Origin: Trichosphaerium sp. ATCC 40318
Taxonomy: Eukaryota; Protista; Tubulinea
Reading direction: 5' to 3'
Assembly: GCA_038496445.1 (NCBI GenBank)
Contig: JALMLS010000594.1
Span: forward strand, 143,520-207,519
Length of the DNA: 64,000 nucleotides
Shown: piece by piece, positions 7,409 to 63,652 of the stretch
How positions within the stretch are numbered: the first letter of the stretch is position 1
Layout of the letters: each line of letters starts with the position of its first letter
Position numbers and translations under genes: made by a program
Notes under the pieces: model-generated
What the model was told of the DNA's origin: nothing
Databases searched by the model: none
Seen by the model: the letters and a program-made list of their open reading frames with translations, nothing else

Positions 7409-8420
7409 CTATAACTCAAAGTCTAGTTGATGTAAAGCCCATATATCATCATAAGAGGGGGTGGGCCCAGATGACCAGCCACTGTTTATAGATAAATCAT
7501 CATAAAAGTCAAGCCCTGATGAATCAGTGTTTGGAGAGAAAGGATATCCACTTGTGAAGAATACTATACCAGGAATTATCACGTCTTCAGTCACAAAAGT
7601 ATTATGTGCTATCAAAGTATGAATACCTTTCAATACCTTAACCCCATCATCACTAACTTTGGTATGACTAACATAAAGAGTATGTACACCGACCAACGCT
7701 TTAATACCTTCATCAGTAACCCTAGTACCTGTAATATTAACCTCATGTGCACCAGCTAATTCCTTGATGCCCTCATCAGTTATTTTGTAGCAATACGACA
7801 AGTCAATAGTGTGTACACCAGCCAACGCTTTAACACCTTCATCAGAGAACGTGTTACATCTACCCAAGTTTATAGTATGCACACCAGCAAGAAACTTGAG
7901 TCCTTCATCAGTAACAAATGAACTCCTTAAGTCGACAGTATGAATACCACCCAATGTCATAATACTAGCATCAGATGGTGCAGCTTCGCTAAGATCAATT
8001 GAATGTAATCTACAGCACTCGTAATCGACATCTTCTCCAAATAGACCTTCAATACCTGATGTTTTAAATCCAGCAAGAACACAGATAATATCATCCCCAC
8101 GGTCGTTGTCTTGTAGAAAGAAATGTTAGAATGATTAGATGATGTGATAGACAGGTGTTGTACCAACAATGTTATTATCTAGGGTTAGGACTTTAACTGC
8201 AGTCTTCGTCTTTCGTGCTTCAGAGAACATATTGTTGAATAGGTACGCTTGAGCTAGTGTTCTTATTATCACTGTATTGTACCCAACGATGTTATGAATG
8301 ATAGAGCAAAGGTGTCTACAACTTTGTGACACTGAGAAGCGGGTTTTTGTCGTATTTTCAAGTATTTTACTCAAAATCTCAATAGGGAGCTCCAGTAAGT
8401 TTGTAGGTCTATGTTGCGTA
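7409..8420 (-). CDS. F-box/LRR protein (AGVHTI..VTDEG repeat family); start uncertain
   Basis: F-box LLELPIEILSKIL...SQSCRHL. One GT-AG intron at about 8162-8111 restores the frame into the LRRs (LAGVHTINLGRCNTFSDEGVKA). Confidence 0.8.
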
Positions 8421-21073: not shown

Positions 21074-22593
21074 ATGATCCCATCACCACTAAAGAAGGTA
21101 ATTGCAACCGTTTTCATCAAAAAAAAACTCCTAAACTCGTTCTAACTTGTACCCATCAATAGCGTAATAATGCATCTACTACACAGTTTCATACCCAATT
21201 ACTAGAACTGCCAATGGAGTTACTTCTCGATATAATCGATCTAGACTCAGAAATCAATCTTAAATTTCCGCTTCTATCAAAATCAACGGCGATGTCAACA
21301 AGGTTCGATTGTGATCTTAAGAAACATGGTAAATGGTTGAAATACAAAAAACATTGTGAGAAGGGATCACCAGATGGATCACAAATCGTATGTCAGGAAT
21401 ATTGGAAAAATGGTAAACAACACGGAGAATACAAGTCATGGTACACCAACGGAAAAGTGTCTGTTCAATGTAACTTTGTAAACAATGTCTGGGAAGGGCA
21501 ATACAACTGTTGGGACCCTAATGGGCAATTGAATGAACAGTCTTATTATGTCAAAGGACAATACCATGGAGAGTTAAAACGTTGGTTTGAAAACGGACAA
21601 TTGAGAGAGTTATGGACGTATGTCAAAGATATAAAACATGGCATCGTCAAGAGCTGGCACTTCAATGGACATATAGAAAAGCAAGGAACATATGTTAATG
21701 ATGAACTATCTGGAGAGTATAAGGAGTGGTATGATAATGGAAAACTGGAGGTAGAGTGTACATACAAGAATGATAGACGTGTTGGAATGTACAGGGAATG
21801 GCATCCGAATGGAAAACTAGAAATGGAATGTACCTACGTCAATGGTAGACAACAAGGACACTACACCTCGTGGCATGATAATGGTCTAGTTTGTTGTCAA
21901 TGTATTCATGTTGATGGTCAAAGAGAAGGAGAATGCGAGGTGTGGTATGAAAACGGCAAAATATGTGCACTGTGCACGTGTGTAAACGGAAAGAAATACG
22001 GAGAGTACAAACAATGGTTTGACAACGGACAACAGCAAATGCAGTGTAACTATATTGATGACAATCTACACGGAGAGTTTACAGAGTGGTATGAAAACGG
22101 AGTAATAGCTGTTAATTGTTATTACATCAATGGTAAACAATATGGAGAGCGAAAGGAGTGGCACGAAAACGGCGAAAAGGAGCTACAGCACACTCTTGTA
22201 AATGACAAATACAATGGTGAATACATGGCTTGGTACGACAATGGACAGCTGTACAAGCAAGCCACCTATACCAATGGTATCTTAAACGGAACCTATAACA
22301 AGTACTATCGCAATGGGCATTCATGGAAGCAATGTACTTATGTCAATGGAGCCAAACACGGTGATTACAAGGAGTGGCATGGAAATGGAGTGTTGCTTTG
22401 CCAGTGTAATTTTACACATGGATTGAAAAATGGAGAGTACAGGCAATGGTATGATAATGGTCAATCATGGATACAATGTTATTGTGTTAATGGCAAACGA
22501 GAGGGTGAGTATAAGAGATGGTACTACAGTGGCAAATTGGGAAAACATTGTACCTTCAATGAAGGTAATCGAGTTGTATTCAAAATACGCTGA
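21074..22593 (+). CDS. F-box plus MORN-variant (YwqK/MORN_2-type) repeat protein
   Basis: Exon 1 MIPSPLKK (21074-21097), intron 21098-21162, then ...QLLELPMELLLDII...FPLLSK (F-box-like). About 16 tandem 24-aa repeats follow (HGEYKEWYDNGQL...CxYVNG). Confidence 0.8.
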
Positions 22594-30271: not shown

Positions 30272-31408
30272 TTGATGGAAACAGCGATAAAACAAGTTAA
30301 TCTTATTGAAGAGCTTCCACCAGAGACATTAACACTTACTCTTCGTTATTTAAATAGAAAACAGCGTATCACAGCTTCATCAGTGTCTCACCTGTTTAAT
30401 AACGTTATTCGTCACAATATTGGCTTTGAAAAGATCAAATTGACAGAATCATCAGATTGTCACGTGTTAAAAGGCAGTCCGTTGCTTAAGAACACTACAA
30501 TTTCTTCTTTTCGGCTTAAAGTATCAGCAAGTGACTTGGCTTGTCTTTGTGGTGTCCACACGATATCTCTGGGCTCTTCAAACGTCACTGATGAAGGTGT
30601 ACTTTCTTTATTACAACATGGACAACACAGTGTTCATACAATCAACCTGGCATGTACAGATATCACAGATGTTTCATTGAAGGCACTTAGCAGCACCGTA
30701 CACACGATTAACATTGCCAGATGCAAGAACATTAGTGATGAAGGTGTTAAAGCACTTAATCATGTTCACCGATTAATACTTTGTAAACCACGTGAGTCTT
30801 GGTTCAAATATCTCGCCAACATCCACACACTTAAGATTTACAAAGCAGATTCCTTTACAGATGAAGCAGCTAGATTATTAACTAACGTCAAAGTCTTACA
30901 TCTTTCTTATTGTGACACAGTTACAGACAATGGATTAAAAGATCTGGTCAATCTTGTTCGTCTTGATATTAGAACATGTGATAGTATCAATTACTCATGC
31001 CTACATAGTTTGATAAACCTTAAATATCTCACAATAAGGGAGCTTTTAAAGGAAATAACTGATGACAAATTGAAGTATTTGACAAATCTGGAAAGTCTTG
31101 TTCTTTTAAAATGTGGTAGTATAACTGATGAAGGAATGAAGCACTTGGTTAACCTTAAACAACTACTTCTTTGGAGCTGTGTTAAGATAAGAAACTCAGG
31201 ATTGAAACACTTGATCAACTTAGAATACCTCATTCTTATGCACTGCAAGAATATAACAAATGATTGTTTGAAACATTTGATATCTCTTAAATGTATTAGG
31301 ATCTCTGGTGAAAGCCGTATTACAAATGAATGTACTGATAAATTGGGTGTTACTATGAATAGGCGTGACACTGTTGATGTATATGAACCTTTTCGATATT
31401 TTAACTGA
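30272..31408 (+). CDS. F-box/LRR protein (intronless)
   Basis: LIEELPPETLTLTLRYL...SSVSHLF followed by about 11 LRRs (ITDEGMKHLVNLKQLLL). Confidence 0.85.
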   Translation: MMETAIKQVNLIEELPPETLTLTLRYLNRKQRITASSVSHLFNNVIRHNIGFEKIKLTESSDCHVLKGSPLLKNTTISSFRLKVSASDLACLCGVHTISLGSSNVTDEGVLSLLQHGQHSVHTINLACTDITDVSLKALSSTVHTINIARCKNISDEGVKALNHVHRLILCKPRESWFKYLANIHTLKIYKADSFTDEAARLLTNVKVLHLSYCDTVTDNGLKDLVNLVRLDIRTCDSINYSCLHSLINLKYLTIRELLKEITDDKLKYLTNLESLVLLKCGSITDEGMKHLVNLKQLLLWSCVKIRNSGLKHLINLEYLILMHCKNITNDCLKHLISLKCIRISGESRITNECTDKLGVTMNRRDTVDVYEPFRYFN

Positions 31409-31864: not shown

Positions 31865-33383
31865 TTAGTTTGTTTTTATTACACGTCTAGCTTTATTTAC
31901 AGTTTTATGAAATGCTTTTCGTTGCTCTCTATCTATTTTATAGTATTGTGGGCTAATACTCAAATCATTATTAACACGTAATACAACTCCTATACCATGT
32001 AAGTCAGGAGAGACAAATAGATTTGTGAATGATCCAATTTTAAAATGTGAAAAAAAAAACTCAAGTGGGCTATTTGTTGGTGTCATTCTCGCTTGTCATA
32101 AGTTTTTTTCTCGTACCGTTGTTGTCACACCGATCACAATAATCTGATGCACTGAAAATATGATGTATGTTATCATCGTGAGCTGTGATATATCCTTCAA
32201 TCATCATCTTATGGGAGCTTATAATACTCTTCAAGTTATTCGTTTTAAGGAAATTCTGTGTAATATCTTGTCCAAATGTTTTCCCTGTTTCAAACAAGTC
32301 AACACTCACTCTGAACTGTGATTTCAAATCAGCTTACCACAATTCGGATTGATAAACCATCCGTCATGGCCTTCATACTCTGACCAAAGAATATCATACA
32401 CCAAGCCCTTATAAGGTACCTCCTTAAATCTATCAATTGAAGTTATGTCATTAAGTGTCGTTACTAACGGACTAAGACCGCTATTAACACAAAAGTACGT
32501 ATTCCCAACAGTAGCAGCTAAAACAGAAGAAGTGTGAGAATAACTGAATACAAAATTTCTTTAGAATAGTACCAAGAGGGAGAGCATCAAATGCAAAATT
32601 AACTACATGCCAAATATGTTGATTGTAATATTTTATGCATTCATCAGTAAAACCAAACACATGAGCCATAGTTCGTGTATCATGACGACCTCGTAGTAAA
32701 TGTATTCTATTAGGATACAAAATCTTTAAAGCGAATAATAGTGCTACAACACGGATAGAACAGAAACCTCTAACAATTAAAAAAAATTAGTTGAAGAAAA
32801 AGAAGAAAAAAAGAGGAAAAACAAACACGTGATTGAACATTTACTTGTTGATATAGTTTCCTAGAAATAGAAAATTTGTATCTGATGGCATCCCCTCTAT
32901 TTTAAAGACCTCAATCAAATCTGCAAAATGACCATGAATACTACCAACAACAGATATAGGAGCATCGATAGTAAGAACATTTTTTTCTTTTTGTAAAACT
33001 TTCGTTGCTTGTGTTGCAATTACTTCCAGCGTTTCTATTGTAATTGGCTTATGAGACATGCAAGCATCTATCATCAAGCTCGCCAAGGCATTTATATCAT
33101 ATGAGTTGATAAAGGCGAAGCGTGGATCCATCTACAAAGTCATCATCCCAAAACAGCTCTTACAGTCCAGTTTTACAACACGTACGTGTGTCGTGTCTGT
33201 TTTGACACCCTCAATTGGCTGAAGGCCTGTGTTACGTAATATAAACGTCCAGAAACGCTCATTGCTTATTATTCCACGTAAATAGACGCAAGAGGCGTTT
33301 AAACAGACGATATCTGCGTATTTTAACGAAGTAGTTATTTTAAACAGCGTCTCTGTTGGTAGACGCAGTAAGTGAGCTGTCAT
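31865..33383 (-). CDS. F-box fused to PP2A-like PPP-family pseudophosphatase
   Basis: N-terminal F-box LLRLPTETLFKITTSLKYADIVCLNASCVYLRGII...FW, spliced in phase 0 to a full PPP fold. Motifs are degenerate: GSIHG, GNYINRG, RGRHD, CVNSG, SSH. Confidence 0.85.
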
Positions 33384-46638: not shown

Positions 46639-47145
46639 ATAAAAATAAAAATATATTTCATGTGTAGTTGTTGTACTTGTATCTCGAAAAGGCAAACGCG
46701 TTTATATTCAAAAAACAATAATACCATACTGATAATAACATGGTTTTGTTGACACATACAACAGGTAATAACTAAGCAAAGGTATAAGCAGTAATTAAAT
46801 AGCCCCAATAGTAACATTTTTATTTAACAAACATGTTTGAAATGTACACTAATTTTATCCTTTCGTTGTTCATGTATTGTGTACGTTCTTCGACTTTATA
46901 TAAAAAATAAAAAAAAAGATTAGAATACAACGGTCTCTAAAATAAGTCATTCCAGTACTTTTCAGGGCATCCACGCATAAGATATTACAGCAATTTACCA
47001 CAATATATATTCAGTGAAATAGCCCGTTGACCAAGCAAGAATACGCTTCAATCTGAACGAAAAAATTTTCAACATTTCCAAATTTCGAAAAGAAGCTTCC
47101 ACAGGCCAAAATAAAAAGTGTCAGCGGTGCCAGGGCAAGCAAAAC

Positions 47146-47217
47146 AGTCCCCGACGGGACTTGAACCCGCAATCCCCAGATCCGAAGACTGGTGCCATAC
47201 CATTAGGCCACGAAGAC
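47146..47217 (-). tRNA. tRNA-Arg(TCG)
   Basis: GTCTTCG..CGGGGAC acceptor stem, D arm TGGCCTAATGGTATGGC, anticodon loop CT-TCG-GA, T arm GCGGG-TTCAAGT-CCCGT, downstream TTTT. Confidence 0.93.
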
Positions 47218-48135
47218 TTTAACGCTGTGAAGAAACTTGATGAGTACTGACCCGATCAATTGTCATGTTGACCATCACTGACCGTGTTTCAATGTCCATC
47301 TGTAGGCTTAATGGCGTTTGTGTTATCTATTGATACTCCTATACTGTTTAGGGGAATAAAAAAAGTGATTTTGGGGTTTTCAACTTTGTCGCGTTGTTGA
47401 ACCGTCAAAAATGAGTATTGGTTATCCGACGTTGTTTTATCTCAAGTGAACTACCTATTTCATCCATAGGCGGCTAATATCATTCTTTTTTGGACTGGTC
47501 TTTTTGCCAAACGCTCAAAATACGCGAGTAGCGCTTGGTGATAACCTCTTTGGTGTAGATTAATACCGTATCGTTTTAACGTATAATTATGTTTAGTGTG
47601 CGCCTAATAGTTACGAATGCGGTCCATATCACGAAACAAGGCGCCTACAAAGATTTGAGTCCACCTTCTAACGTTTGTCACTTCTCGCATTTGCAAAAAA
47701 GCTTTTTTGCGAGTTTTCAGCACACGCTTAACTCCCTTACAGAACTTACGCAATTATACCCTCCTTCCATATCTTTGGAGTCAACTGACGCTAAATTAAT
47801 TTCTTGAAACTCGTAGCTGAAGTTATGTTTGCGTCCTTTTTGTATAGCTCAATAAAACAACCTCGTAAATACAAACCATACCTTAGTGACTGACCGCATC
47901 TGTATCTATGTGTTCATTTATTCCTTCTTTCATCATTATTGTAGTGGTGGGAAGTTTTGGTTTTCGAATGACTTCAGTTTTTCTACTTGACTTTTGTACA
48001 AATTGCGTGCTGTCAACTAATTGTAAGGAAATTATTTCCTGTTCTACCTCATTGTCAATGGCGAAATTTTGTTGGCTCAACCACCTCCTCTTGACTTGTT
48101 CTACCACGGCCACTTTAGTAGTACGCATTGAGCAC

Positions 48136-54354: not shown

Positions 54355-56100
54355 ATGACAACCAAAATAGAGAGTGGAGAATTAGGAACTTGGCTAGAAA
54401 CTCTAGCACAATGCAAATATCTACCAGAGCAGAATTTGAAGCGCTTATGCGACTTGGTACGTCATACGCGAGTTTCAGTATATAGTGGCGTATTTTTGCG
54501 CTGTTTTAGAGCGTATACAATAAGTTACCGGCTCTTTTTTCGCCTTGTTGCAGATTAGTAAAACGGGCCACAATTCTTATGTAGTGCTTAGGTAAAAGAA
54601 CTACTACTCGAAGAGTCCAATGTGCAACCTGTTAGTTCTCCAGTGACGATCTGTGGCGACATCCACGGCCAATTTTACGACTTAATGGAACTGTTTAGAA
54701 CCGGCGGTTCTCCTCCAGACACTAATTACATTTTTATGGTGCGTTTAAATTCAGACTTCGGCATTTTGGCAAAATACTTTAATTCTTTTTTGCTTCGCAT
54801 TCTACTAGCGCATTCGTAATTGCTTTATTAAACTATATTTGCTCCGAAATAGCGTCAAAACAGAATTGATAAAAAAAAAAAAAACGTTATTCTTGTTCTC
54901 TCACTTTTAGAAATTACATTGGATGCACCACTATCCTATTTCTTGACCTTTTCTTTGCGAGATATTAACAAATCTTCTTCAGGGCGATTTCGTCGATCGT
55001 GGTTACTATTCCCTTGAAACATTCACCTACCTACTATGTCTTAAGGCTAGGTAAGCAGAAGAAACCCATTTGAGCGGGTTTTTCGCAAACTTCGATTTTT
55101 GAACCTCACTTTTTCGGTAGATACCCTGATAAGGTTACTCTATTGCGTGGTAATCACGAAAGTAGACAAATTACTCAAGTATACGGGTTTTACGATGAAT
55201 GCCAACAAAAATACGGCAACGCCAACCCTTGGAAGTACTGCACTCAGGTTTTTGATCTCCTCACCATTGCAGCTGTACGTTTGGATTTATTTATTGTCGT
55301 CAACACTAAGAAAACCTGAAAAAGGAAATTATTGCAATTCGGGACCGCTTTTTTATGTTTTTGTCGATTTCTTGCTTTGTTTCACTCTTTTTGACTTTTT
55401 CTTGTAGTTAATTGATGGACGTATCTTGTGTGTCCATGGTGGTCTATCTCCAGGTGCGTCGCTGTACCTCTAATTTTTTTTTGGAGGATAAACGCGGTTT
55501 TTTTGATAATTGGTTTTTTTTTGCTTACTTTTTTGGTATTTTAGACGTTAGAACAATGGATCAAATTAGAACCATCCCACGTAACCAAGAAATCCCTCAT
55601 GAAGGTGCTTTCTGCGATTTGATGTGGTCCGATCCAGATGATATTGAAACCTGGCATGTATCCCCTAGAGGAGCTGGTTGGTTGTTTGGTCATAGAGTAA
55701 CTAGTGAGGTACGTTAGCAGAAGCATGCAACAGATAGAGATTATTTTTGATCCATTTTTTTTGTTAATTTGATGCTGACTTGTTTTCTCGTTTAGTTTGT
55801 TCGCATTAATAAGTTGAATATAATTTGCCGTGCGCATCAATTGGTGCAAGAAGGTTACAAGTATCAATTTGAGTCCCAATTGGTTACAGTTTGGTCTGCT
55901 CCTAATTATTGCTATCGGTATGTTGTTTGGATTCTTTCTTTTTTTTTGTTTATTTTGTGCTTATTTTCTTTAGTTGTGGTAACGTTGCCAGTATCCTTGC
56001 TCTTGATGAGAACCTTAATCGCGACTTTAAGATCTTTCATGCTGTCCCTGACTCTGATCGTGTTATTCCACCACGTCAACCAATGCCATACTTTCTCTAA
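54355..56100 (+). CDS. PPP6C: Serine/threonine protein phosphatase 6 catalytic subunit (Sit4-like)
   Basis: [87 protein letters not shown]-terminal PYFL. Confidence 0.93.
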
Positions 56101-56431: not shown

Positions 56432-58200
56432 TTAAAATCCTGAGTATTGAGTGTCGCCTGTTTTGTAGTAGTTGTAAGTTGGTGCTTGGTATTGTCTATC
56501 ATATACTGCTGGTTGTTGTGTTGTTCGTTGGGGAGTAAGATATGGTGAACTAGCGCGTGATGGAGTTGTTTGATAAGACGCTTGGTACGGTGAACGTCTT
56601 GGGACTGTCCCTGGCGTATGATAAGGTGATTGTGCCGTAGGTGTGAGATAAGGAGAGCGACTAGCCATCAATGATGGTGTATGGTATGGTGATGATGCTA
56701 TTGGAGTACGTGGTAGACTTGCAGCGCTTGGGGTATGGTAAGGAGACTTTGAAACACCATTTGAATACGGAGATTGAGAAAGTATACTTGGATAAGGTGA
56801 CCGAGAAATCCCGTTTGGACGTGGAGATTTAGGTATTGTACTTGGATAAGGTGACTGAGTAATTCTAGTTGGGCGTGGAGATTTAGGTATTGTACTTGGA
56901 TACGGTGATTGAGAAACTCCGTTTGGATATGGTGATTGAGAGTTTCTGCTTAGATACGGTGATTGAGAATCTCTGCTTGGATATGGAGATTGTATTTGTA
57001 ATGGACTTCGTTCTAGGTCTTGTGTTTGTACTGGTAGCTCTGTTTTTATCGTTTGTTCAAGTGGTTGTTCTGTTTCTTGCTCTTGTTCTTGACCTTGGTC
57101 TTGTTCTTCGACTTCTTGTGATATTGGTTCTATTATCGTTTCGGGTTGTTGTTCTTGGTGTTTTACTTGTGTGTTAACCTTTTCTAGTTTTTCTTGAAGT
57201 AAGTTTGCTGTGTTTAGAAGCGTTTGACATTTCTCAAAGAGTTCGTCATTTTCTACTTCTTTCATTTGCATGAGGTTATCCAGAGTCTTTATTTAGGTGT
57301 GAGAAATAGTCACGTGTATGATAGTTTAACGTACATCTGCACGTGATTTTTGTCGTGCGAATTTCATGTCGTTTAAGTATGTTTCTTGGGTCATTGTTTT
57401 TGTTAGTTCATCGACTTGTAGTTCTAACGCATCTATTCTACTTTTACTTTGTTTTTCAAGAGCGTTTAGCTTAGATCTAGTGACCATATGTTCTGCTTTT
57501 TCTTGGTGAAGATCTTCGAGTAGTTTTGACTCATTCTGGACGCACGTGTTAGCGACGATTTACAAAAAGACGGTTCTTCCTCAAGAAAAACAGTTTTAAT
57601 TTTTTTTTGCATTTCCTTTACCTCCTTGTAGCTCTCTAGTAAATTCTGGGCCTCGAGGTGCTTCAATTCGATATTATTAAACGTCTCTTGTCGCGCTTGA
57701 AGTTTTCGTAACTAAACAGTCTGTAAGAGAGGAGAAAAAAAAAACCTTCAAAGAGATACATTATCGCGTTATGGTTTTATCATATCAAATAATTTTAGCG
57801 TACTTCTGATTCCATCTGACCTATTTTACGCTTATCTACTGTCTCTTGTACATTCTTCTCTTCTAAATATACCTCACTTTAATACAAAGTGTTTGGGTAA
57901 CATTACCTACTAGTTTTTGAAGCACTTCCTCATAAGCAATGATAATATTTTTAAACTTCAAGTTTGTTTCTTGTTCTCTCCTTAGTACATCTTCGTAGTC
58001 CATTTGTATTATCTGTAGCTCATTCATAGCCTTTTAAAAAAATCAGTAAACTATTAAAAATAACACGTGATACTCTTAAATACTAAAATATACAACCTCT
58101 TCGATCACGTGATCGATCTTACCTGATGATAAATTTCTTTTTTTAATTTTGCGATATAGTCTCCTGCTGATAGCTCCGATGAACTGAAAGGTAATTCCAT
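56432..58200 (-). CDS. TACC-domain-like coiled-coil protein with C-terminal Ser/Pro/Tyr repeats (start uncertain)
   Basis: FKNIIIAYEEVLQKLV, NLLESYKENESKL and LMQMKEVENDELFEKCQTLL match recalled TACC-domain patterns (IVAEYEKTI; EGFRKNEEVL; KNKEIEELTKICDELI). Confidence 0.6.
56540..57005 (-). repeat. Coding tandem repeat, about 27 nt/9 aa, (Q/K/R)SPY(P/H) units
   Basis: QSPYPSRDS QSPYLSRNS QSPYPNGVS QSPYPSTIP... in ORF 56432-57271. Confidence 0.8.
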
Positions 58201-62529: not shown

Positions 62530-63110
62530 TTACCATTCAGGGTAGCCAATATATTCTGCGCCCTCAAGTGCCTTGATGCCTTCAGAAGTTATTGAAGTTT
62601 CGTAGAGGGAAATAGTATGAACTCCAGCAAGTGCTTTAATGCCTTCATCAGTCACATTCACACATCTAGCAAGGATAATTGTGTGAACACCTTTAAGTGC
62701 CTGAATGCCTTTATCAGTTACTGAAGTGCCATCAAGGTAAATAGTATGTACTCCAGCAAGTGCTTTGACACCTTCATCTGTTACTGATATGCCACTGAGG
62801 TGAATATTATGAACTCCAGCAAATTGTTTGATAATATCATCTCCAACATATGTTTTAACTTCAATTTTTGTGTATTTCAGAATACCTGGATGTTTTGAAG
62901 CTGATTTTGCTTGACTTAACGTTCTAAGTACAATAGCGTGGTATCCAATAACGTCATGAACGATTGAAGCAAGGAAACGACAGGTTTGAGCAGCTTTGAA
63001 TCGTGATTTGGTTGTTTTACGCAAGATGTGTGCTATTATATCTGTTGGAAGCTGTGATAAAGTTGGCTTTTTAACTGAGAAAATAAAGAGTGTCAATGCA
63101 AATCTGGCAA
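62530..63110 (-). CDS. F-box/LRR protein, paralog of 7409-8420 (start uncertain)
   Basis: LSQLPTDIIAHILRKTTKSRFKAAQTCRFL followed by AGVHTI..VTDEGIKAL repeats. Confidence 0.8.
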
Positions 63111-63652
63111 ATAAGCCTAAGAGGGTTAGTGGAACTGTAGGACGTTCTAATAGATGTATACGAAGGGTGAAGAAGTTGGTATCTTGTATTCGTGTGAAAA
63201 ATGAACTGCGGGAAGTGTACAATACAAGGGATCACGTTCTGTTAACTCGGATTGTAAGTCTTACAAAGGTCAACATCGAAAATAAATTGCTTTGACTGCC
63301 AGTACTTTTACTCACTACAGCACAAACTAATCACAAAATAATTTCCCCACGTACAATTAAAGCAACATAGCTACATTTTTACATAGTCAATTGAAGTGTA
63401 AAATGGTTCTGAGGTATGTAAAAACGCATCAAATATTCTCCAAATTTACGGTTTACATTTTTTGGATACTTTGTAATAGGATACATAAGCTTACTAAAGT
63501 AGTAAAGATAGTTTTGCATCATGTAACATTTCGCTTTTATCAAAATTAAGGATATAAGTGGCTCAACATCGATTTTCTGCCATGACAAAAAGATAGCCAG
63601 AGCTGGCATTCAAAGGAGTAAGCCATACCAACTTACAGATAAACTTATTTTA

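Follow-up and report, generated by a model that had tools for sequence, protein, structure and literature searches.

The window analysed here is a stretch of 64,000 nucleotides from contig JALMLS010000594.1 of Trichosphaerium sp. ATCC 40318; it is eukaryotic, with 37% G+C and short GT..AG introns. On its minus strand, positions 33383-31865 hold a six-exon gene whose predicted spliced product, 384 amino acids long, would join an N-terminal F-box to a phosphatase domain of the PPP type (hereafter the F-box-PPP gene and protein). An intact PP6-type catalytic subunit is encoded on the plus strand of the same window (54355-56100; eight exons, 309 amino acids, canonical motifs, ending in PYFL), and the seven introns of this gene, of 56-244 nt, were used as a local splice-site reference. 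Shortly downstream of the PP6 gene, on the opposite strand, lies an ORF of 279 amino acids (56432-57271, minus strand), whose N-terminal half is acidic and rich in Q/E and which contains an extended series of SPYP/SPYH-type repeats. The window also contains a 459-amino-acid intronless ORF with approximately 20 MORN-like repeats of the form G.Y..W..NG (21214-22593, plus strand) and a tRNA-Arg(TCG) (47145-47218, minus strand), which is its sole Rfam match.

Four F-box loci of the window, including the F-box-PPP gene, pass Pfam F-box models, the three others being located approximately at 8255-8413 (minus strand), 30290-30448 (plus strand) and 62917-63075 (minus strand). Thus, the window can be described as rich in F-box genes. 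Two ORFs, at 30275-31405 (plus strand) and 62530-63222 (minus strand), consist of an F-box followed by leucine-rich repeats with the pattern GVHTI(N/S/Y)L; the protein encoded at 30275-31405 is 40-46% identical to two MMETSP transcripts, after which come weaker matches to unnamed metagenome sequences, Willaertia and Protochlamydia.

Gene model and junction of the F-box exon

The six exons of the F-box-PPP gene are given here in transcript order, all on the minus strand. Exon 1 (33383-33186, 66 codons) starts with the ATG at 33383 and encodes the F-box and a linker of approximately 17 residues. Exon 2 (33131-32845) encodes the PPP N-terminal helices, the motif GSIHG and the start of GNYIN, and exon 3 (32769-32573) the end of GNYINKG and RGRHD. 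Exon 4 (32517-32338) carries VNSG, IDRFKEVP, LWSE and an NPNCG loop without an equivalent of Arg214; exon 5 (32284-32117) carries KTFGQDITQNF, SSHK and SASDYCDRCDN; and exon 6 (31989-31865) supplies the final PPP beta-strands (VVLRVNNDLSIS...) and a basic tail, ending at the stop codon 31867-31865. The ORF that starts at the ATG 33383 on the minus strand encodes LLRLPTETLFKITTSLKYADIVCLNASCVYLRGIISNERFW.

The five introns measure 54, 75, 55, 53 and 127 nt, and all five are bounded by GT..AG. Intron 1 (33185-33132, minus strand; 54 nt, phase 0, GTACGT...TTTGTAG), predicted from the sequence, combines a GTACGT donor, a branch-like TGAC and a YAG acceptor, its donor and acceptor resembling those of the window's PP6 gene. 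Introns 2-5 likewise exhibit branch-like YTRAY motifs and the donor types of the seven PP6-gene introns. For intron 2, there is one other possible acceptor, and its use would lead to a stop, as judged by reading the sequence by eye. The preliminary description of this locus had reported that GDFVDRG is replaced by GNYINRG; the motif is indeed altered, but its final arginine does not stand, because it was read from an AGA containing the acceptor AG, and the spliced motif is GNYINKG, with a split codon AA|A. Intron 5 (32116-31990, minus strand, 127 nt) is the least certain of the introns. Among the six 3' models compared, the one that includes it fits the PP2A/PP4/PP6/PPG1 profile best (282.4 bits versus 275.7 bits for the intron-free model); all other 3' ends, namely the model without intron 5 and four other donor-acceptor pairs, were rejected with lower scores on this profile.

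The intact spliced ORF noted in the preliminary description was recovered: its 384 codons contain no stop, whereas the two other frames contain 31 and 45. At this composition, the probability of meeting no stop over 384 codons is approximately 2.5e-13. Under a codon model whose training set consisted of other window genes, the chosen frame comes out best in every exon, and the F-box-PPP gene follows the order GC1>GC2>GC3, like the neighbouring genes.

The F-box itself spans residues 5-49 (33371-33237, minus strand) and matches the Pfam F-box-like model PF12937 with 27.5 bits (E 2.7e-6), approximately 3 bits over the curated cut-off of 24.3 bits; the classical F-box model PF00646 gives 14.1 bits on exon 1, under its cut-off of 20.5. 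The F-box exon is in frame with a complete PPP domain, one canonical 54-nt predicted intron lying between the two. Intron 1 ends in an in-frame TAG (33134-33132), which is immediately adjoined by the ATG (33131-33129) forming the first codon of exon 2, and the methionine of this codon matches, in the alignment, the point at which PPP catalytic subunits naturally begin. If intron 1 were left unspliced, the F-box ORF would be 83 amino acids long and would stop right before an ATG able to start a PPP-only protein. The position of this ATG straight after the intron, together with its match to the PPP N-terminus, suggests that an existing PPP gene acquired an F-box exon ahead of its original start codon, on the upstream side. 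The ATG of exon 2 looks like a relic of this ancestral start, and could possibly serve as an internal start for a PPP-only isoform.

As for the earlier proposal of an F-box fused to a dead PP2A-like phosphatase, the F-box and a complete, metal-site-altered PPP domain are both present and in frame, whereas the splicing that fuses them is predicted. The best explanation of the locus would be a real, lineage-specific protein-coding gene, composed of an F-box, a short linker and a complete PP2A-like fold whose metal site is ablated.

The PPP domain and its catalytic site

Residues 86-363 align to positions 13-293 of the PP2A/PP4/PP6/PPG1 profile with 282 bits (E 2e-88) and a single small gap, and the Pfam Metallophos model matches exon 4 alone with E 9e-4. 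To describe the departures from active enzymes, the domain was set against 10 PPPs with canonical motifs (insect PP2A-C, the window's PP6, fungal PPG1s, a PP4-labelled sequence, three calcineurins and two others). The F-box-PPP protein keeps 32 of the 51 columns that are invariant in these 10 active PPPs. Changes are concentrated on the catalytic positions (metal, phosphate and general acid), seven out of 10 being altered, versus 12 out of 41 for the other invariant columns (Fisher one-sided p 0.023), and these 12 other changes are mostly conservative (T/S, V/I, E/D, D/E, N/D, F/Y).

The seven catalytic changes are given here in PP2A numbering. Four of the six metal ligands (D57, H59, D85, N117, H167, H241) are altered, through D57S, D85N, N117R and H167N. 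Both phosphate-binding arginines are gone, one through R89K and the other, R214, being absent from a loop that is one residue shorter; in the acid pair H118-D88, the aspartate is changed (D88N) and H118 is kept. The retained catalytic residues are H59, H118 and H241. On the minus strand, D57S lies in GSIHG (residues 129-133; 32945-32931, exon 2), the changes D85N, D88N and R89K in GNYINKG (32861-32766, across intron 2), N117R in RGRHD (residues 188-192; 32693-32679, exon 3) and H167N in VNSG (residues 238-241; 32488-32477, exon 4), the last two motifs showing in addition E119D and G168S, respectively, beside the catalytic residues.

Most of the motif changes first read from the letters are therefore found again in the spliced product, where GSIHG, RGRHD and VNSG replace the GDIHG, RGNHE and VHGG that are intact in the window's PP6; IDRFKEVP (residues 255-262; 32437-32414, minus strand, exon 4) and FGQDITQNF are present as well. 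The reported change from RAH to SSH holds for the loss of the arginine and the alanine, but not for that of the metal-ligand histidine, which is retained in SSHK (residues 310-313; 32219-32208, minus strand, exon 5). The C-terminal YFL is indeed lost: the protein ends in ...KARRVIKTN, with no DYFL, when the window's PP6 ends in PYFL and the PP2A reference in TPDYFL. In place of TPDYFL stands a tail of 21 residues (31868-31930, minus strand), with eight K/R and one D/E (RKAFHKTVNKARRVIK), and this basic tail might be a nuclear localization signal.

Single changes at these ligands lower activity by orders of magnitude, as known from the mutagenesis of PP1, lambda phosphatase and calcineurin. In view of this mutagenesis, of the loss of ligands and of the phosphate clamp, and of the inactivity of the Plasmodium protein PfPPP8 discussed below, we judge the PPP domain to be very probably catalytically inactive. 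Indeed, with four of six metal ligands and both arginines altered or missing, a dead phosphatase carried by an F-box protein is the natural reading, although the persistence of H59, H118 and H241 makes some residual metal or phosphate binding conceivable. Judging from the predicted product, the fold is preserved while the catalytic site is dismantled.

Relatives and ancestry

When the exons were compared one by one with PDB sequences (phmmer), exon 2 matched calcineurin with 59 bits and PP2A-C with 53 bits. PP2A-C was the best match for exon 3 (54 bits) and exon 5 (45 bits, versus 42 for PP5 and 23 for PP1), and the best native chain for exon 4 (47.7 bits), the list being topped there by a calcineurin fusion chain, 9b9g_I, through two matched stretches. 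Over the domain, identity reaches 43.6% with insect PP2A-C in a local alignment, 41% with PPG1, 40% with the PP4-labelled sequence, 40% with calcineurin and 35% with the window's PP6; over 294 tree columns, the identity to PP2A-C is 39%. PP2A-C and PPG1 are nearly tied for the best alignment score (582 versus 587). In exon 5, SASDYCDRCDN (32153-32121, minus strand) includes the motif YCxRCxN, which is of the PP2A/PP4/PP6 type, the pattern C-x-R-C-x-N being known from these three families.

Maximum-likelihood trees (LG+C20) place the F-box-PPP protein outside the PP2A/PP4/PP6/PPG1 clade (support 98/97), with or without the other degenerate sequences described below. These trees were built without PP1, PP5 and PP7, their groups were named after the tree had been seen and long-branch artefacts are likely, so that the placement outside the crown may be a long-branch effect. 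The terminal branch of the F-box-PPP protein is 1.1-1.3 substitutions per site long, versus 0.2-0.45 for PP2A and PP6. A branch three to five times those of PP2A and PP6, on which the ORF is still intact, argues for selection on a non-catalytic role. In AU tests, a sister relationship is rejected both with PP2A (p 0.0035) and with the PP6 of the window (p 1e-5); the rejection is weak for a grouping of the crown with the query (p 0.0285). Hence, the ancestry in PP2A-C that the preliminary description had drawn from IDRFKEVP and FGQDITQNF is upheld in so far as PP2A-C is the top family by similarity, but the trees and the AU test against a sister position to PP2A speak against it. ‘PP2A-like’ is a fair term for the domain, whose descent from PP2A-C would not be established by the trees.

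A recent duplication of the window's own PP6 gene was also considered, and is ruled out by the 35% identity and the AU test on that pairing. Intron positions differ between the two genes, as judged by eye from the residues at the exon junctions.

A HMMER search with exon 2 against 1.84 billion cluster representatives returned 3,532 PPP matches, the best of which had E 1.7e-22 and 42% identity; the highest identity in this search, approximately 54%, was confined to short stretches. No F-box was found among the N-terminally extended exon 2 matches that were inspected. A word-indexed search, seeded with an alignment of degenerate PPPs and with the exons, gave 12 matches, none of them with an F-box. 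Scans of metagenome proteins, of exact 28-mers and of viruses brought up no relatives, and the ESM Atlas yielded generic PPP fragments only.

Four degenerate PP2A-like proteins of metagenomic protists (P0039, P0086, P0057 and P0012, from loci L001-L003), which are unnamed in any source, show a motif decay similar to that of the F-box-PPP protein (GS/GN..G, GN..N.G, HSG). Their first two motifs read GSIYG and GNFVNNG in P0039, GHILG and GNYISSE in P0086, GNIHG and GNYVDKG in P0057, and GSLHG and GNFINNG in P0012. Unlike the F-box-PPP protein, to which they are 35-42% identical, none of the four has an F-box. P0039 and P0086 group with the F-box-PPP protein (support 83/92), a grouping that may result from the attraction of long, AT-biased branches, and P0012 groups with Tritrichomonas sequences. 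PPP-type pseudophosphatases may be commoner in protists than the literature suggests.

PfPPP8 of Plasmodium, described in 2023, is reported as the first pseudophosphatase of the PPP type to be characterized by experiment; it is essential, and inactive in vitro (PMC10317984). GDXXDRG, the only mutated motif named for it, is changed from GDxxDRG to GNLINRG, and the protein is filed with PPP8 homologues of Apicomplexa and chromerids, with no F-box reported (PMC10317984). The F-box-PPP protein resembles PfPPP8 in its PPP fold and in a GNxxN[RK]G motif (GNYINKG, versus GNLINRG in PfPPP8), and the non-catalytic role of PfPPP8 is what we propose for the F-box-PPP protein as well. It differs from PfPPP8 by four further degenerate motifs, by the F-box and by the PP2A-like character of its domain; the additional motifs and this PP2A-like character make an origin independent of PfPPP8 likely, as far as sequence comparison can tell. 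With PP2A-C, PP4, PP6 and PPG1, the F-box-PPP protein shares a full-length PPP fold, all motifs in order and the YCxRCxN loop; unlike them, it possesses an added F-box, changed metal ligands, arginines and D88, and no TPDYFL tail.

F-box proteins whose second domain derives from an enzyme are known, for example KDM2A/B (JmjC), FBH1 (helicase) and the Dictyostelium protein JcdI (PMC9485057). The F-box-PPP protein is similar to these in combining an N-terminal F-box with a globular enzyme fold as second module. The enzyme domains of KDM2 and FBH1 are active and, to our knowledge, none of the enzyme domains in KDM2A/B, FBH1 and JcdI is a PPP phosphatase. The pair STYX-FBXW7 also ties a dead phosphatase to SCF function; however, the fold of STYX is that of the cysteine phosphatases (DUSP), and STYX acts in trans, as a protein of its own, to block the F-box protein FBXW7, whereas the F-box-PPP protein would be a covalent fusion with a PPP fold. 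In the literature searched, no F-box-PPP fusion was found, only STYX-FBXW7 in trans and unrelated papers. The ‘F-box PP2’ of plant papers is phloem protein 2, not a phosphatase. A survey of 2026 states that no PPP-fold pseudophosphatase has been reported in humans (PMC13216928), and a paper on PPP evolution mentions Kelch and EF-hand fusions but not an F-box one (PMC8249667). F-box proteins and PPP-type pseudophosphatases are both known kinds; what would be new is their combination, found in no database or paper searched.

Proposed function and competing readings

The reading that we prefer, and hold to be moderately probable, is that the F-box-PPP protein is a non-catalytic substrate receptor of an SCF (Skp1-cullin-F-box) ubiquitin ligase, with the dead PPP fold as its binding module. 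The F-box would dock the protein on Skp1, which is encoded elsewhere than in the window, within the SCF complex, and the phosphatase fold, no longer hydrolysing phosphate, would choose the targets of ubiquitination. The favoured targets would be the usual docking partners of PP2A-type catalytic subunits, i.e. regulators, chaperones or foreign proteins targeting PP2A. Indeed, with both phosphate arginines and four of the six metal ligands gone, binding through the phosphate pocket looks weak, which favours the recognition of docking partners over the trapping of phosphorylated substrates.

A bolder extension of the SCF-receptor reading, speculative and in our opinion rather unlikely, would make the gene part of a bait-and-degrade repertoire, in which adaptors of cullin ligases (here the F-box) are fused to degenerate versions of the host's own core proteins. 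As an integrated decoy, the dead PP2A-like fold would then catch PP2A-targeting proteins of intracellular bacteria or giant viruses and deliver them to SCF for destruction.

The locus could also be evolutionary debris, that is, a young exon-shuffled chimera, functionless and still undisrupted. The lack of close relatives in the collections searched, the very long branch and the wrecked catalytic site are all consistent with such an origin. However, neutral decay is expected to break the reading frame, and here a divergence of approximately 56-60% from any active PPP is accompanied by 384 codons without stop or frameshift, by canonical sites at all five introns and by the conservation of 29 of the 41 non-catalytic invariant residues. 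We therefore regard this explanation as unlikely.

Within the SCF-receptor reading itself, a particular case would be that of a phospho-degron reader, in which phosphoserine or phosphothreonine is still bound by the dead pocket and the proteins that carry them are brought to SCF. H59, H118 and H241 are retained in the pocket, which has acquired the basic residues K162 and R190, and a trapping role of this kind has been proposed for PfPPP8 and demonstrated for the pseudophosphatases EGG-4/5 (PMC10317984). Yet PPPs hold phosphate chiefly through their two metals together with R89 and R214, and the F-box-PPP protein probably has no metals, lacks R214 and has a lysine in place of R89. Moreover, PP2A-type catalytic subunits owe their substrate specificity to regulatory subunits and not to the pocket, which also counts against a phospho-degron reader, and we consider this case improbable.

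The junction between exons 1 and 2 bears on another alternative, according to which there is no fusion: the locus would encode two separate products, an F-box ORF of 83 amino acids and, from the ATG 33131 on, a pseudophosphatase with the PPP part only, or would produce mostly the PPP-only form through this internal start. The TAG|ATG placed exactly at the junction, and the alignment of the exon 2 methionine with the natural PPP N-terminus, are what such an arrangement would display. Two eukaryotic genes without any spacer would, however, be unusual, and so short an F-box protein would have no target-binding part, whereas the 54-nt interval is in phase and has the typical GTACGT donor, the branch-like TGAC and the YAG acceptor of an intron. 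For these reasons, the absence of a fusion seems doubtful to us.

Lastly, the protein might still be an enzyme, a phosphatase or phosphoesterase of an atypical kind whose site has been rebuilt, anchored on SCF in order to dephosphorylate components or substrates of the ligase; this we consider most improbable. H59, H118, H241 and Y265 do remain, and yeast Ppn2 is an active enzyme although its GDxVDRG motif is non-canonical (PMC13216928). However, the two-metal centre loses four of its six ligands through D57S, D85N, N117R and H167N, the general-acid partner and the phosphate clamps disappear with D88N, R89K and the absence of R214, and PfPPP8 is inactive with only two D-to-N changes (PMC10317984).

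If the SCF-receptor reading is correct, the F-box-PPP gene would represent, after PfPPP8, a second and independent case of a PPP-type pseudophosphatase, more thoroughly inactivated than the first, and, within the literature searched, the first to be found wired directly to a ubiquitin ligase. Were the bait-and-degrade extension true, it would be a counterpart, working through ubiquitin, of the integrated decoys found in the NLR immune receptors of plants. Provided that the fusion is expressed, it would offer a simple, testable system in which to look for the binding partners of a PP2A fold without metals, and it bears on a route by which protists could acquire new ligase specificities through exon shuffling.
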